Source of the DNA: Prasinococcaceae sp. CCMP 1430 | Taxonomy: Eukaryota; Plantae; Prasinodermophyta | DNA: 5,453 nucleotides | Assembly: GCA_013416795.1 (NCBI GenBank) | Contig: RQSC01000051.1 | Coordinates: 1 to 5,453 of the forward strand | Direction of reading: 5' to 3' | In this document: piece by piece, positions 1 through 5,453 of the stretch | Numbering within the stretch: the first letter of the stretch is position 1 | How the letters are laid out: each line of letters starts with the position of its first letter | Notes under the pieces: model-generated | What the model saw: only the letters and a program-made list of their open reading frames with translations | The model's database searches: none | Told to the model about the DNA's origin: nothing | Program-made: the position numbers and the translations under genes

Positions 1-1
1 G

Positions 2-460
2 CGCGGCGACGGGCTCGGCGAGCAGCGCGGCGCGCGGCGCGATCGCGAGGGTGGCGCCGCGGGCGACCGCGCCGAAGACGTCCGCCTGGTGCGGGTCGAA
101 GGTGAGCGCCGACGCCAGCATGACGACGCTGCCGGGGCGGATGCGCTCGGCGTCCGCGCGAGCCGTGGCATACGCGGCGGCGTGCGACTGCGCGCACAGC
201 ACGCCCTTGGGCGCGCCGGTGGAGCCGCTCGTGAACTGGACGTACAAGGCTTCTTGGCTGCTGTTGGTGTTGGTGCTGAGGATGCTCGGGTCTCGGTGGT
301 GGTGGTGGTGGTGGTGGTCCTCTTCGGGGGTGGTTGGTGGTGTTGTGGGTGGGTGGCATGGTGTCGTCGCCCGGAGAGACAGGTCGGGGACGAAGTCCTC
401 CGCCGCGCGGGCGACGAGCCGCCACCGCGACCGCGCGGCCGCCGCCGCCGCCTCGCGCGC
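2..460 (-). CDS. Internal fragment of an adenylation (AMP-binding, ANL superfamily) domain of an NRPS or NRPS-like protein; partial at both ends
   Basis: Manual minus-strand translation is open from 460 to the window edge: AREAAAAAARSRWRLVARAAEDFVPDLSLRATTPCHPPTTPPTTPEEDHHHHHHHRDPSILSTNTNSSQEALYVQFTSGSTGAPKGVLCAQSHAAAYATARADAERIRPGSVVMLASALTFDPHQADVFGAVARGATLAIAPRAALLAEPVAA. It contains the A3/P-loop motif YxxFTSGSTGxPKGV (244-200) and an A4-type FD motif (100-95) followed by GATL, at the expected spacing. Confidence 0.93.
295..318. repeat. (GGT)8 trinucleotide microsatellite encoding His7 on the minus strand
   Basis: Eight consecutive GGT units are directly visible. In the adenylation-domain frame they read D-HHHHHHH-R (His codons 316-296). 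Confidence 0.9.
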
Positions 461-462
461 GT

Positions 463-463
463 N
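463..463. other. Single N; probable contig-concatenation or scaffold junction
   Basis: The coding strand switches from minus to plus exactly here. Both genes are cut mid-domain with no intergenic space, and the right side is visibly less GC-rich. Confidence 0.85.
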
Positions 464-464
464 T

Positions 465-710
465 TCTGCCGACTTCTCTGATGACGTCCAGAGCATCGCG
501 GCGACGCGCGATGGGCGCAATCTTTACGTGCCTGGCGGCGAGGCGAGCACTGTCGTCGCGCTGGTGCGTTCCATGGACGGCCGAATCAAGTATGCCGGAC
601 AGTTACCAGCGGGAAGTGCTCCCGTCCATGGTGTCGCAGTGCATCCTAATGACCGCATCGTTTATGTGCTCGGATGGAAATCCAATACCGCCGTTGTCTG
701 GTTCACGAGA
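465..710 (+). other. Last two blades of a beta-propeller (lactonase/YVTN-like)
   Basis: Two ~45-aa units with the blade pattern: VQSIAATRDGRNLYVPGGEASTVVALVR and VHGVAVHPNDRIVYVLGWKSNTAVVWFTR. Confidence 0.7.
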
Positions 711-3700
711 AAGGCAGACCGCTACGACCGCCCGGCAGAGCTCTGGACACCACCTCCTCCTGGCCCACCACCGCCGTTACAGCCACCACTGCCACTGCCA
801 CCGCCATCGAGCCCGCCTTCGCCGCCTCCTTTGCCGCCTCCTTCACCGCCCCCGTCTCCGCCGCCGACTCCTCCCCCGAGCCCACCCCTTCCATGGTGGG
901 GTGGCTTCCTGCCAGACCCATCATCACTGCCTGAGGCTGAGGGTGCAGACGCAGGCGGGGGGTCGGCGCAGAGGACTGGCTTAGGAACTGGAATGCTGGA
1001 CGGCGATGATGGCATGACGGCGGTGTCGATCATGCGGTCGAAGTGCGTCGGGGGCACCGACGAGGAGCACGTGCTCCGCTCCTGGTTCAGTGGGCAGGCA
1101 GCATCATGTACCTGTGATGCTGCCTTCATTGCTTCAATTGACAGGGTGGGCGCGCGCAAGAGCTTCGTCGAGGCCGTACAAAAGATCACGGTTGATGACC
1201 CCCGAGCTGATACAGCGCTGATCTACGACTTCTACCTCGAAATGTGCCAGTCTGTGCGCTGCTGTGCCGACAGCCAGCAGACGCTGCTGCCTTCGCAGTG
1301 CGATGTGCACAATATCTGCCCCACGATCGACGATGAGTCCACTGCCGGAGCTGGCCTTCCCCTGGGTCCGATCGCCGGCGGTGCCGTGGGGGGCCTGCTG
1401 TTGGCAGCCGGAGCGGTGCTGTTTGTACGTCGCGGGGGAGCGAAGGTTAGCGTCACTGGCACCGTGCAGGATGCTGGCACAGGGCAACCCCTTGCGGGGG
1501 CGCTCGTGTCCCTTGGCAAAGGCAAGGCCGATACGGTGACAGCCGACGCCGACGGAATCTTCGTCGTCGAGCTACGCGCCGGGGCCGTGAGCGTGCTGCG
1601 CGCATCAATGGAGGGGTTCCGGCCGCTGGTGCAAGCGTGCAGCGCTCCGAAGAAAGGCCAAGTGGCGCCTAGTGGAGGAATCATCCTCGAGCTCGAATTC
1701 ATCGTTTACCCAGTAGGGGGGAGGGTGGTTGACGCTGCCACAGGCAAGCCCATATCTGGCGCCCTCGTCACGGTGACCACCGCCGCTGGTCTCATGGAGT
1801 GTGACACCAACACGGAGGGGGAGTGGAGCTGCGGGAAGCTTCCGCCGTCGGCAGCGGTGCACGCGGTGGTACGCGCCGAGAGGTACAGAGAAGGCACCGC
1901 GTCACTCAAGGAGACTCTCGCTGGCCCGGTCGGGCCAGGCGGCGCACTTGACGTTGAATTGGTGCGCGAGCCCATCCTTCTATCGGGCCGAGTGCGCTCC
2001 TCCGAGTCAGATCGACCTCTCGAGGGCGCTGAGGTCAAGGCTCTAGACGCGGGCAGTGGCGAGTTTCTTGCCACTGCCACGACTGACAAAGACGGCAACT
2101 ACACCGTGGCGGTGGCGCACGGAAAGCACCCAAAGGTCACGCTAGTGGCTAGCGCAACCTCGCACGCCTCAGCTGAAGCTGCAGCGGACGTGGACGACGA
2201 CGATGTCGCGGTCGACGATCTACGCGCTGTGACGCTCAAGTACGATCTGAGCGGGTGCGTTGTTGACTCCAGGGACAGTGAACCGATCGGCGGGTCCGAG
2301 CTCGCGTTCCTTGATGCGGACAGTGAGGAGACACTCGTCACTACTGACACTGAGGGAAAGTATGAGGTGCGCTTGCCTGCTGGCGAGTACACGCGCCGAG
2401 TGGTTTGCCCGGGCTATGACAACGCTTACGCGACCGTCGCCGTCGTTGAGGACGCCGCGAACTGCAACATCGAGCTCGAGATCGAGAAAAACGAAGTGTC
2501 GGGCACCATCACCGAGGTGGACGGCGACGGTCCCTTCGCCGGCGCCACCGTCGAGCTGTTGGATGCTGAAAGTGCAGTTGTCGCCAGCGCGGTCACCAAC
2601 GAGGCCGGCGAGTACTCACTCGCCGCCCCGCCGGCGGCATATACGCGGCGCGTGTCGGCGCCGGACTTTGACACGGTTGAGGATACGGTGCAGTTGCAAA
2701 ACGGCGACGCCATTGTCAATGACGAGCTCAAGCCGACTGTGTACACTGTCGAAGGTTGCCTCAGCGACGCGGAAACAAACTACAGACTGTCGGGCGCCGA
2801 GGTCGTCCTGGTGAACAGCGACGGTGATGTCATGGGGCGAACCTATGCTGACGACGATGGCGAGTACAACTTCAAAGCGCGCGCGGGTGAGTACAAGGCG
2901 CGCGTCACGCTGGATGGGTACTCGGCCGTCGCGGTGCCATTGAGCGTCGGCGTCGAGGCGGACGCCCGCCGCAGGGCTGTGGCGGACGCCGCGGCAGGAC
3001 AGGCCGATGATGCCGACCCTGCCGACAGCGCTGCTGGCGCGGCCGCCGCCGTAGCGAGCATGGTCATGCCCGAGATCGTCTTGCAGACAGCGACGCTCGT
3101 CCTCCGCGGCATGGTCGAGAGCGCCGGCGAACAAGGTGGCTACGTCGAGGACGCCGAGATCACGCTCCTTGACGGGAATGGCACCGAGGTTGCGACCACC
3201 GTCTCGGACGGCTTCGGGAGCTACGGCCTGGAGCTGAACGAGGGCACGTACGCGCTGCGCGCGTCAGCCAGCGGCTACCATCCGAGCGTGGTGCCGCTGG
3301 TTGTCGACGGTGGCGATGTTGATCAGAACTTCAAGCTCGCTGAGATCGCATTCGCTGTGTACGGCACCGTCAAAGATCTCTTGAACAGTACCGAGAACAC
3401 GATCGTGCCCGTTCCTGCCGCATCCATCACCCTCAACCCGGCCGGCGGCGGCAAGAAGCGAGGCGCTGCACTGAAGCCATCGCGCAAGACGGGGATGTCC
3501 GCAGAGGACGGCACCTTCCGCATCGAGGGAGTGCGCCCAGGCTGGTATTTTGCCAAGTTTGACGCTGACCGATACACAACCAACACGACGACCGTCGAGG
3601 TGCCCTTCGAGGACATCGAGCTTGACGCCAGCGTGTCGCTCACTCGCTACGCTGTGTACGGCCGCGTGTCGGACGCTGAGAGCGGCGACGCGCTGCACGA

Positions 3701-4301
3701 TGTGCGCGTGGTGCTATTGGGAGCGACCGGCGACCAGATGGCTGACGCGCGCACCGGCGAGGGCGGTGAGTATGCCTTCGAGGACCTGTTGTGCGCCAAT
3801 TACACCGTGCACGTCGAGGCGACCGGCTTCTTCAAGGCCGTGGACATCCCGGCGCCCATTGTGGATGGTGACATCGAAGGCGTCGACGCAGCGCTCGAGT
3901 GCGTGAAATTCAATGTGAGTGGCCGAGTATTCAGCATTAACGCCGGCACGGGTGGGCTCAGCGGTGCCGTCGTGTGGCTGAAGCGCAATGGGAAGATAAA
4001 GATGCGCACGGTGTGTGGCGAGGATGGCACATACACCTTCGGCGCGCAGAGCGGCGGCCTATACAACATCGTCGCTGCGGCGGAGGGGCACAACAAGATG
4101 CGCATCCCGCTCGAGCTCGATGCCGACGTGGCGCCTGGCAAAGGGCCCGCCGACCTGGTCCTGCCGAGGCCGCTCCCTCCCGACAAGGACATCGGCATGC
4201 AGCTGGTTCGCTGCTACGCCATGGCCAAGTCGATCTTCCAGTACTACTGCAGCGCCGGGAGCGTGGGCGAGAACAACCCGTTCCAGATGACCCTCATTCA
4301 G
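465..4301 (+). CDS. Large exon (5'-partial) of a single-pass membrane protein: beta-propeller blades, Pro-rich stalk, Cys-rich module, TM helix, 10 carboxypeptidase-regulatory-like repeats, start of a TPPP-like region
   Basis: An uninterrupted 3.8-kb frame (part of ORF 51..4805) with a coherent, recognisable domain series from SADFSDDV to NPFQMTLIQ. It ends at the splice donor CAG|GTACTT, after which that frame no longer resembles protein. Confidence 0.9.
750..893 (+). repeat. Proline-rich (SPPP-type) low-complexity stalk
   Basis: 48 aa with 34 Pro: PPPPGPPPPLQPPLPLPPPSSPPSPPPLPPPSPPPSPPPTPPPSPPLP. It resembles the hydroxyproline-rich linkers of algal surface proteins. Confidence 0.9.
1044..1319 (+). 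other. Juxtamembrane 8-cysteine module of unknown family
   Basis: Cys pattern C...CxC...C-x4-CC...C-x5-C over 92 aa (KCVGG, SCTCD, MCQSVRCCAD, QCDVHNICP), immediately before the TM helix. Confidence 0.6.
1362..1427 (+). other. Single transmembrane helix, type I orientation predicted
   Basis: Uncharged LGPIAGGAVGGLLLAAGAVLFV, preceded by acidic DDES and followed by RRGGAK, which fits the positive-inside rule. Confidence 0.8.
1446..4163 (+). repeat. Ten tandem carboxypeptidase-regulatory-like (CarboxypepD_reg/prealbumin-like beta-sandwich) protein repeats
   Basis: Units start at about 1446, 1707, 1977, 2241, 2490, 2742, 3096, 3351, 3648 and 3909 (mostly 83-90 aa). They share the consensus V.G.V.D..tg.Pl.GA.V.L.......TdxxGxY.....G.Y......GY...........L, for example TGTVQDAGTGQPLAGALVSL, GRVVDAATGKPISGALVTV, TTDKDGNYTV and TTDTEGKYEVRLPAGEY. 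Confidence 0.88.
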
Positions 4302-4431
4302 GTACTTAGTGCGCGCGCGTGCGCTGTGGCGCGGGAGCTCGCACCGCGCGCGCTCCAGCCCTTGCGACAAAGTTTCGATGCTGACGCGCGAGGACGTGCG
4401 CTAATGCACTCGCGCGCACAACCTGCGATAG
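4302..4431 (+). other. Spliceosomal GT-AG intron, 130 bp, phase 0
   Basis: Donor CAG|GTACTT, branch-point-like GCTAAT at 4400-4405 (GCTGAC also at 4380-4385), and acceptor GATAG|CTG. Removing it joins FQMTLIQ in frame to LDDFMRSLRL (the frame of ORF 4444..5199). The interior carries GCGCGC runs. Confidence 0.88.
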
Positions 4432-5034
4432 CTGGACGACTTCATGAGGAGTTTGCGGCTGCCCGACGCCCTCTCGGAACCGCAGAACCCGACAGTCAAC
4501 GCCATGTTCGGCGTGGTCAATGGGCCGGTCATGACCTCGCTCAAGATCGATCAGAAGGGGCAGGTTGCCGGCGGCCTCCGCCCCGACCCGAACAAGAAGG
4601 TCGACGACGCCATCACGTTCGACGAGTTCATGGACCTGCTGGTGCGCCTCTCCTGGCTGGTTGGCAAGCGCGGTCACCTCAGCGTGAATGCGTTCCCGCA
4701 CACGCGCCGCGGCGTGGGGTACGCCCTGGCGCTCTTCATGGAGGAGGTGGTTGCCCCGCGCGCGGAGCGGTTGGAGATGGACGAGGCCTTCGAGAGGGCC
4801 TTTAAAAAGTTCAAATACAACGCGAGGGATGCGCGAGACCTCAAGCGCGCGTGGGACTCGCGCAAGACCGGCGGCCGGGCCGTGGGACTCGGTGCCTTCG
4901 TGACCATGTGCAAGGACTGGCGTTGCACGGGCAACAAGGTGTCCATTATGAAGGCGCGCTCAGTCTACGTGCAGTTCGCCGATGATGACCGCGGCAAGCT
5001 GCCCTTCTTCCTCAAGGACGAGACACCCACCAAG
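4432..5034 (+). CDS. Second exon of the membrane-protein gene, encoding tandem p25alpha/TPPP-like (EF-hand-like) helical repeats; 3' boundary uncertain (frame stays open to TGA at 5199)
   Basis: Protein-like sequence with G/C-ending codons from LDDFMRSLRLPD through AITFDEFMDLLVRLSW and AFVTMCKDWRCTGNKVSIMKARSVYVQF to DETPTK. After 5034 the frame becomes Arg/Pro-rich, typical of an off-frame read of GC-rich DNA. Confidence 0.8.
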
Positions 5035-5338
5035 GCGGGCCGGCGCTCCCGCCCGCGGCGCCGGCGCGGACGGCGCCCGTCGCGGTCGCGACGAGAGCCG
5101 GCGCGCAGAACGGGTCGGCGATTCGCGCCGCGAACCACACGATCTCCCCTCTCATCGCGTCGCGCTCCTCGCGTGCCTCGCGCGCGGCGGCCTCGTTGAC
5201 GGCCAGCGCCTGCGTGGCCAGCAACAGCGCCTGGCGTGCGCTCTTCGCCCACGCGGACGCCGAGACGCGCCCTTCGCCGATGGCTCCGCCTCCGCCAATC
5301 ACTCTTCCGCCTCCTCCTCCGCCGTCGTCCATCTTCGG
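5012..5338 (-). CDS. Probable exon of an unidentified minus-strand gene (hypothetical protein)
   Basis: ORF 5012..5332, extended to a splice acceptor at 5339. It has mostly G/C-ending codons and a helical, protein-like segment: AWAKSARQALLLATQALAVNEAAAREAREERDAMRGEIVWFAARIADPF. No family recognised. Confidence 0.45.
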   Translation of the reverse strand, partial: PKMDDGGGGGGRVIGGGGAIGEGRVSASAWAKSARQALLLATQALAVNEAAAREAREERDAMRGEIVWFAARIADPFCAPALVATATGAVRAGAAGGSAGPPWWVSRP

Positions 5339-5427
5339 CTGCGCTCCTCGCGCGCGCGTCGGGAGAAACGGCGGTCGACTCGACTCGGGCGACGCGGCCG
5401 TCCCGCCCCTCGCGCGCGCGCGCTCAC
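5339..5427 (-). other. Putative spliceosomal GT-AG intron, 89 bp, minus strand
   Basis: The minus strand reads ACT|GTGAGCGCGCGCGC...GCGCGCGAGGAGCGCAG|CCG AAG ATG. Donor and acceptor are canonical, it has GC-dinucleotide runs like the 4302 intron, and the exon after it is in frame with the ATG at 5332. Confidence 0.5.
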
Positions 5428-5453
5428 AGTGGCGCCGCCGGCCGCCGGCCGCC

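Follow-up and report, generated by a model that had tools for sequence, protein, structure and literature searches.

The window analysed here, a 5,453-nt stretch of contig RQSC01000051.1 from the alga Prasinococcaceae sp. CCMP 1430 with a GC content of 66%, holds the middle of one very large gene for a predicted membrane protein. The alga belongs to the Prasinodermophyta, the phylum that branches before the split between Chlorophyta and Streptophyta. On the plus strand of the window, a single polypeptide joins an ectodomain with propeller blades, a proline-rich stalk and a cysteine-rich module to a transmembrane (TM) helix, ten β-sandwich repeats and a helical C-terminal module, which bears out the central claim of an earlier, sequence-only reading of this DNA. 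We regard it as highly probable that this architecture is correct together with a type I topology, in which the repeats and the C-terminal module would lie in the cytosol. The best overall explanation that we can offer, and one that we put forward tentatively, is a large type I membrane protein that may connect the cell wall to the cell cortex through a TPPP-like tip. The scaffold itself is chimeric: the window is misjoined at 463 and at 5038/5039 and holds only the middle of the gene, and thus the polypeptide is cut at both window ends. Coordinates of open reading frames (ORFs) and other features are given on the scale of the window unless a contig is named. The following elements of the gene can be recognised within it.

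464-743, plus strand: a pair of lactonase-type propeller blades; longer contigs show four, of which these come last (translation; PF10282 on contig L001)
744-896, plus strand: extensin-like proline-rich stalk of PPSPPP type, with length polymorphism (translation)
1044-1319, plus strand: juxtamembrane module with eight cysteines (exon-1 residues 194, 215, 217, 261, 266, 267, 279 and 285)
1356-1427, plus strand: single TM helix IAGGAVGGLLLAAGAVLFV, then RRGGAK (Kyte-Doolittle hydropathy 2.22 in a 19-residue window, the sole strong peak)
1452-4133, plus strand: ten CarboxypepD_reg (transthyretin-like β-sandwich) repeats (PF13620, E 3.8e-97; self-built hidden Markov model, HMM)
1452-1658, 1713-1913, 1980-2207, 2247-2459 and 2496-2711, plus strand: repeats 1 to 5 (self-built HMM)
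2748-2966, 3102-3320, ~3354-3617, 3654-3875 and 3915-4133, plus strand: repeats 6 to 10 (self-built HMM)
4134-4301, plus strand: end of exon 1, with a linker and the opening helices of the EF-hand/p25alpha-like C-terminal module (...KSIFQYYCSAGSVGENNPFQMTLIQ; alignment to P0017, P0021 and P0037)
4302-4431, plus strand: intron of 130 nt, GT...AG, with a branch-like CTAAT site at ~4401 (sequence; CTAAT read by eye)
4432-5038, plus strand: the part of exon 2 that falls inside the window, with the remainder of unit 1 of the module and the first half of unit 2 (homologue alignments)

The unity of this polypeptide depends on the removal of one intron. A single long frame is open on the plus strand from 51 to 4805, including all of 465-4301. 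After ...NPFQMTLIQ, which ends at 4301, this frame becomes Arg/Ala-rich, and a second, protein-like frame opens exactly at 4432. The 130 nt between the two have a length of 3n+1, with a change of reading frame across them, and carry the CTAAT site about 30 nt upstream of their 3' end. The products of the two exons were searched separately, and orthologues that are uninterrupted at this point stood in for the exon junction. P0017, P0021, P0032 and P0037/P0038 all align without a gap across it; P0038, from a catalogue labelled 'merc' and with a run-like accession, is probably of metatranscriptomic origin. Opposite NPFQMTLIQ and the following LDDFMRSLRLPDA of this gene, P0017 has NPFQMAFFQLEAFMADLKLPEG. 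Upstream of the junction, P0017 and the exon-1 product align collinearly along 720 residues (30% identity, E 2e-78), and the alignment runs to the very last residue of the exon. Downstream, the exon-2 product matches P0016 with 45% identity in the MAFFT alignment A1 (41% by BLASTP), and P0019, P0024 and others match as well.

Sequence variation fits the same gene structure. Between the window and contigs from the Tara/Logan metagenomes there are 3 variable sites in the 130-nt intron, as against 38 in ~4,440 nt of exon. Twenty-six of the exonic sites are synonymous, all in third positions, and 12 are non-synonymous; in exon 2, all four are synonymous third-position sites in the exon-2 frame. 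With GT-AG ends, homologues contiguous across the junction and a fitting pattern of variable sites, the splicing out of 4302-4431 assumed in the sequence-only reading appears well supported.

The intron is absent from the orthologue P0017, which is encoded on DNA contigs of 57% GC (L006, L007 and L008). The similarity of P0021 and P0032 ends at other places (after ...ARVEKL and after ...FDEFLDFQV), as it would with unspliced introns. Intron positions thus seem to vary among the lineages that carry this protein family. In two runs of the organism itself, another contig shares roughly the first 30 bases of the intron and diverges at a loose end at 4335, with slightly raised word depth; the shared stretch 4302-4335 may represent GC-rich low complexity or a repeated intron family.

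To place the gene among its relatives, we utilised a HMMER profile of A1 (the exon-2 product and one relative from a word search) against 1.84 billion representative proteins. The search returned 18 relatives, all of one narrow family. The most informative is P0017, a protein of 1,751 residues in one uninterrupted ORF on 57% GC metagenomic DNA contigs. From its N-terminus it has a signal-peptide-like start (judged by eye), a Cys-rich ectodomain, a TM helix, nine CarboxypepD_reg stretches and the same C-terminal region. P0032 likewise carries the TM helix, the repeats and the C-terminal module. Because P0017 and P0032 hold this order and the variable sites fit, we conclude that the TM helix, the β-sandwich repeats and the C-terminal region very probably form one polypeptide. 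The alternative raised in the earlier reading, that the TM-bearing part and the repeats belong to separate genes, fails for everything from the TM helix to the C-terminus, where the order is conserved in these two relatives.

The ectodomains tell a different story. Those of P0017 (residues 1-400) and of the present protein (L004:1-1750) are unrelated (BLASTP E 6.2), in contrast to the collinear cytosolic parts; no Pfam family matched the ~400-residue ectodomain of P0017. By these comparisons, the TM helix, the rod of repeats and the C-terminal module are conserved as one polypeptide among relatives, and the ectodomain is exchanged.

In the protein of the window, the ectodomain and the membrane span (464-1427) contain the two blade-like repeats, the proline stalk, the eight-cysteine module and the TM helix that had been read from the sequence, as judged by translation and hydropathy. 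The Lactonase family PF10282 matches L001:3-1700 with E 3e-4 and 20.5 bits, just under the cut-off of 21.7, over profile positions 225-321 of 344. The blade-like units, with a Pro-rich stretch on either side, number four, compared with seven in a full Lactonase propeller; two of them fall within the window, and the two upstream blades and the further Pro-rich stretch are visible in L001, L003, L004 and L005. Within the stalk of the window, at ~801, the Tara/Logan contigs L001-L004 have 24 extra bases (8 codons). The last cysteine pair of the juxtamembrane module (QCDVHNICP) resembles TCPVHDVCG, which directly precedes the TM helix of P0032. A second candidate TM segment at residues 862-880 (hydropathy 1.64) was rejected, as the same region of P0017 is not hydrophobic.

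The ten carboxypeptidase-regulatory-like repeats of the sequence-only reading were recovered both by the Pfam scan and by the self-built HMM. PF13620 matches with 319.2 bits against a gathering cut-off of 32.3, in ten stretches. An Ala-rich linker separates repeats 6 and 7.

The C-terminal module had been likened to p25alpha/TPPP, a family of microtubule-binding proteins. In a family alignment of 17 rows (A2) it comprises two units. Unit 1 reads KSIFQHY...NPFQM..Q...FM..LKLP...IDQKG.V.GALRPDP.K..D..LTFDEFLD.QVRLAW. over its length. Unit 2 starts FE...KKFK...FV...KKWR..G..SI...R..YVQ.ADDDRG; FEEEEDDDVMEAK and a variable linker then interrupt it before its last part, DQEMTL.EFKAAVCRLAW.LCKGKTL. 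An internal duplication of the module was considered and rejected, as the last helix pair alone aligns between the units (hhalign probability 51%). An EF-hand-like fold of the module is very likely. In the loop aligned to that of S100A9, positions 5, 9 and 12 are kept (D, T/S and E), and positions 1 and 3 are variable or basic in A2; a canonical 12-residue EF-hand loop with acidic ligands at 1, 3, 5 and 12 is not found in this alignment. Classical calcium binding is therefore unlikely, since loop positions 1 and 3 are not conserved as acidic residues.

Whether this fold reflects a true, very divergent relationship to p25alpha is a closer question, and on balance we lean slightly towards it. 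An AlphaFold model of the exon-2 protein from two sequences had a predicted local distance difference test (pLDDT) score of 39 and was unusable. The C-terminal region of P0017, modelled with the 17 rows, reached a mean pLDDT of 47, with 55-72 over most of unit 1. When this model was compared with 48,161 chains by a structural aligner, the top row was 7N6G chain 5Z of the central-pair C1 (Z 7.1, root-mean-square deviation (rmsd) 2.9 over 86 residues), followed by 9HQ4 chain E (entry title 'TTLL11 bound to microtubule', Z 6.9) and a ciliary-tip central-pair chain. The C. elegans protein CE32E8.3 (1PUL) was also among the best rows, with Z 5.1. A second look at the Foldseek list of 528 mostly EF-hand chains placed human TPPP3 (2JRF) first (Z 6.6, rmsd 3.0 over 81 residues) and 1PUL third (Z 5.2), with dozens of S100 and calmodulin-type chains below them at Z of 4.8 or less. 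In a language-model search, unit 1 adjoins clusters of eukaryotic hypothetical proteins, mostly labelled as haptophyte, and 11 of the 30 named neighbour clusters are in the set carrying PF05517 (score 0.94).

Several results weigh against this relationship and against a microtubule-binding tip. The Pfam family p25-alpha (PF05517) gave no match at E values up to 10, either on window:4134-4301, window:4432-5034 and L001:4714-5736 or on the contiguous orthologues P0017:1385-1751, P0037 and P0038, in searches whose HMMER filters may hide very weak matches. Compared with PDB sequences, single sequences and family profiles reach S100A9 and troponin C rather than TPPPs, with weak matches (E 0.05-5) to the EF-hand loop and its exiting helix only. 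The Z values obtained with the model of mean pLDDT 47 stay under the level that the aligner rates as safe, and a Z below 8 can arise from a shared arrangement of helices. Foldseek returned nothing from the PDB at E 0.001 or better with this model, and a shape search of the ESM Atlas returned nothing significant. A word search with the repeat-1 profile A3 for sequences bridging to TPPPs returned known family members only. Tubulin binding of TPPP/p25 has been mapped mainly to the C-terminal tail and not to the folded core that is resembled here. Finally, long and partial p25alpha domains carry a Rossmann-like motif, GXGXGXXGR (PMC3498115), that does not occur in A2; the alignment shows only a loosely Gly/Lys/Arg-rich patch, KAGRGGVRGG, before the last helix, and P0017 and P0019 lack even this. 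As GXGXGXXGR is likewise missing from p25alpha domains of the short and truncated types, its absence does not exclude them. Of the TPPP-like region proposed in the sequence-only reading, the resemblance thus persists in low-confidence fold ranking (2JRF and 1PUL) and in language-model neighbours, and fails at the level of the PF05517 profile; the AlphaFold and Foldseek check suggested there, run on the P0017 region, gave the outcome described above.

These same observations sustain a credible rival explanation, in which the module is a plain degenerate EF-hand/S100-like pair serving dimerisation, metal sensing or the docking of a non-tubulin partner, and the protein, unconnected with microtubules, acts at the wall as a receptor or scaffold. 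At the level of sequence, the only matches are to S100A9 and troponin C, in the EF-hand loop and the helix that leaves it, the p25-alpha profile of Pfam is silent, and many EF-hand and S100 chains follow close behind in the fold lists, at Z 4-5. What speaks for a p25alpha-type tip instead is that both solved structures of that family rank first and third among 528 mostly EF-hand chains, that the top rows of the wide search are central-pair or microtubule-bound entries or 1PUL, and that clusters carrying PF05517 dominate the named language-model neighbours. The non-conserved calcium-ligand positions 1 and 3 in A2 also make a classical calcium switch unlikely. Taken together, an EF-hand/S100-like interaction or dimerisation module is almost as likely as microtubule docking, and tethering of microtubules by the predicted TPPP-like tip is, on the present models, possible but doubtful.

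The orientation of the protein in the membrane can be argued more firmly. A type I topology, with the ectodomain outside and the ten β-sandwich domains and C-terminal module in the cytosol, is predicted because the part before the TM helix is extensin-like and Cys-rich, basic residues follow the helix, and P0017 starts like a signal peptide. Such residues come directly after the helix in all three proteins compared, P0017, P0032 and the present one. A predicted cytosolic CarboxypepD_reg array is unusual, and we know of no characterised example, which counts against this topology; so does the fact that the N-terminus and a signal peptide of the protein itself were not found, every contig ending inside the upstream PPSPPP repeat. 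A reversed or secretory topology, with extracellular β-sandwich repeats and the hydrophobic helix as a signal anchor, would suit both this unreached N-terminus and the mostly extracellular or lumenal location of CarboxypepD_reg and transthyretin-like arrays (Pfam family descriptions). We nevertheless judge it improbable. Basic residues come after the helix in all three proteins, the signal-peptide-like start of P0017 would place its pre-TM part outside, and the pre-TM part of the present protein is Cys-rich and extensin-like, as expected of an extracellular region. The part behind the helix is Cys-poor and ends in an EF-hand/TPPP-like module of cytosolic type.

The gene can be followed beyond the window on independent contigs. 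Nine were available for comparison, five from Tara/Logan metagenomes and one from each of four assemblies (runs) of the organism itself. The stretch 464-5038 is the only one that matches the five metagenome contigs (98.9-99.3% identity), and these agree with each other past both 464 and 5038, where the window differs. In each of the four runs, a contig of ~7.7 kb shows zero differences to 464-5038 and is unlike the window outside it. Before 464 this contig reads ...ACCCAAGTGAAGCTGCCCAA in all four runs, and past 5038 every independent contig reads TGCAGAATTTCGAGGAGG... (VQNFEEA...). None of the contigs listed for the four runs bridges 463 or 5038/5039. The misassembly that the sequence-only reading had allowed for is thus real at both ends of the window, and does not extend to 464-5038, on which the nine contigs agree. 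Gene models or architectures that cross 463 or 5038/5039 of this scaffold are wrong.

At the true locus, two further blades and a second, longer Pro-rich stretch lie upstream, with the frame open to every contig end. Downstream, exon 2 runs for about 140 more codons, through an acidic stretch and a variable linker and then ...DQEMSLSEFKAGVAYLAWLLCKGKTLADRVDMFMSVHYKSV, and ends ...DRVDMFMSVHYKSV at the stop codon. The protein has at least ~1,900 residues, ~1,564 from exon 1 on L004 and 341 from exon 2. The closest protein in the database, P0001, represents a read-through ORF that was called on scaffolds of the Tara Oceans DNA metagenomes and occurs in Logan assemblies as well. The second PPSPPP stretch, upstream of the four blades (L004:1-420 and L005:1-560), spans at least 140 residues with a short Cys-bearing island, PPCVATGLCSPP, and each assembly breaks within it.

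A spurious origin of the long polypeptide, through misassembly or through a frame left open by high GC, with parts from separate genes, is very improbable: the window is indeed misjoined at both ends, long stop-free frames are common at 66% GC and the upstream PPSPPP stretch could conceal an intron or a gene boundary, but nine independent contigs agree over 464-5038 and beyond, the relative at 57% GC has the same order in a single ORF and the variable sites are mostly synonymous third-position changes (26 against 12 non-synonymous). This explanation is already refuted from the TM helix to the C-terminus and could apply solely to the link between the far-upstream Pro-rich region and the blades.

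The remaining features of the window belong to the foreign flanks.

1-462, minus strand: foreign flank, an internal fragment of a gene for an AMP-binding (adenylate-forming) enzyme (Pfam AMP-binding, E 4.8e-14)
463, no strand: a single 'n' marking the left misjoin (similarity to all nine independent contigs begins at 464)
5039-5453, no strand: foreign flank past the right misjoin (no similarity to the independent contigs beyond 5038)

The AMP-binding match covers profile positions 153-243 of 384 and includes the motif YVQFTSGSTGAPKGV in minus frame 2; a His run and low-complexity sequence precede the fragment. In assemblies of the organism itself, 1-253 and 331-462 are found on a separate contig of 3.4 kb that breaks off at 462 and has a word depth of about one quarter to one half of that of the main contig. 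The right junction at 5038/5039 is unmarked in the scaffold, unlike the left one with its single 'n'. Beyond it, 5039-5453 has no recognisable content, and the minus-strand ORF 5012-5332 is without a Pfam match.

At the true locus, the next gene downstream encodes a pirin (domains Pirin and Pirin_C); it is convergent, on the minus strand at L003:5710-7101, and starts about 130 nt past the stop codon. It falls into the same cluster, at 90% identity or above, as PRCOL_00006668 of Prasinoderma coloniale. This species has a genome of 25.3 Mb with 69.8% GC and is coccoid and thick-walled; flagella have not been seen, yet its gene set suggests a capacity for flagellate cells (PMC7455551). The sequence-only reading had considered a flagellar-membrane linker or contact with prey. 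Since the likely Prasinoderma-like host is walled and coccoid and flagella were not seen, we prefer a wall-to-cortex linker, which fits better than a flagellar one and is the better version of the idea; an extensin-like ectodomain on a walled cell speaks for putative anchoring in the wall, not for a place in a flagellar membrane or for prey contact.

In the wall-to-cortex model, the lactonase-type blades, the extensin-like Pro-rich stalks and the Cys-rich juxtamembrane module would stand outside the cell, probably in or bound to the wall, and the single TM helix would cross the membrane. The ten transthyretin-like β-sandwich domains would then form a cytosolic rod of a few tens of nanometres, as estimated from domain size, ending in a tandem degenerate EF-hand-like module of which the first half is closest in fold to p25alpha/TPPP. 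Since relatives keep the rod and the tip but differ in their ectodomains, the cytosolic part has the look of a shared adaptor, which could hold some partner in the cortex at a defined spacing below the membrane. Given the fold neighbours of the tip, microtubules would be the most likely partner. In this model we infer the topology, the length of the rod, the anchoring in the wall and the partner alike. A more specific version, a lineage-restricted 'ruler' in which ten domains and a highly divergent p25alpha module dock cortical microtubules at a fixed distance, a few tens of nanometres below the plasma membrane, and are fused to interchangeable wall-binding ectodomains, seems rather unlikely to us. 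If true, it would amount to a green-lineage linker from wall to microtubule with a plan unlike anything characterised in plants.

Plant and algal cell biology has yet to explain how walled cells couple the wall, through the membrane, to their cortical microtubules, and this candidate protein from the Prasinodermophyta offers a concrete object for experiments on binding, localisation and spacing. The architecture is of interest, and the function proposed for it can be put to the test.

The closest precedent for the tip is found in green algae and stramenopiles, which possess multidomain TPPP-like proteins containing between one and three short p25alpha domains (Orosz 2012, PMC3498115). There, one or two short or truncated p25alpha-type domains can sit within a much larger green-algal protein, often by EF-hand regions; here, the first half of a tandem module resembles TPPP3 and CE32E8.3 in the fold of a low-confidence model. 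However, those proteins are recognised by the p25alpha models of Pfam and CDD, and the present protein is not. TM helices, extensin-like ectodomains and CarboxypepD_reg repeats are absent from all the architectures listed for them (PMC3498115).

The protein also shares a propeller-bearing ectodomain, a single TM helix and, as a proposed role, a link to the cytoskeleton with integrins, which the earlier reading had invoked. Pfam scans of the ectodomain turned up no FG-GAP or other integrin family. Here the blades are of lactonase type, with four seen, and the cytosolic part exceeds 1,200 residues, unlike the short tail of an integrin.

The repeat array is reminiscent of NOMO (Nodal modulator), likewise a single-pass protein with a long transthyretin-like array that is thought to act as a spacer, and the present family has weak Pfam matches to NOMO domains. 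In NOMO the array is N-terminal to the TM helix and lumenal. In the present protein, by contrast, it is C-terminal to the helix and predicted to be cytosolic, with an additional terminal module; if this is true, it would be a rare case of a transthyretin-like array employed in the cytosol.

Class I formins of plants such as AtFH1 are type I proteins whose Pro-rich, extensin-like ectodomain is anchored in the wall and whose cytosolic end binds the cytoskeleton. The present protein would follow the same logic of linking wall, membrane and cytoskeleton. Unlike the formins, no FH1 or FH2 domain turned up in Pfam scans of this protein; in their place stands a β-sandwich rod that ends in an EF-hand/TPPP-like tip, for which microtubules instead of actin are proposed as the partner.

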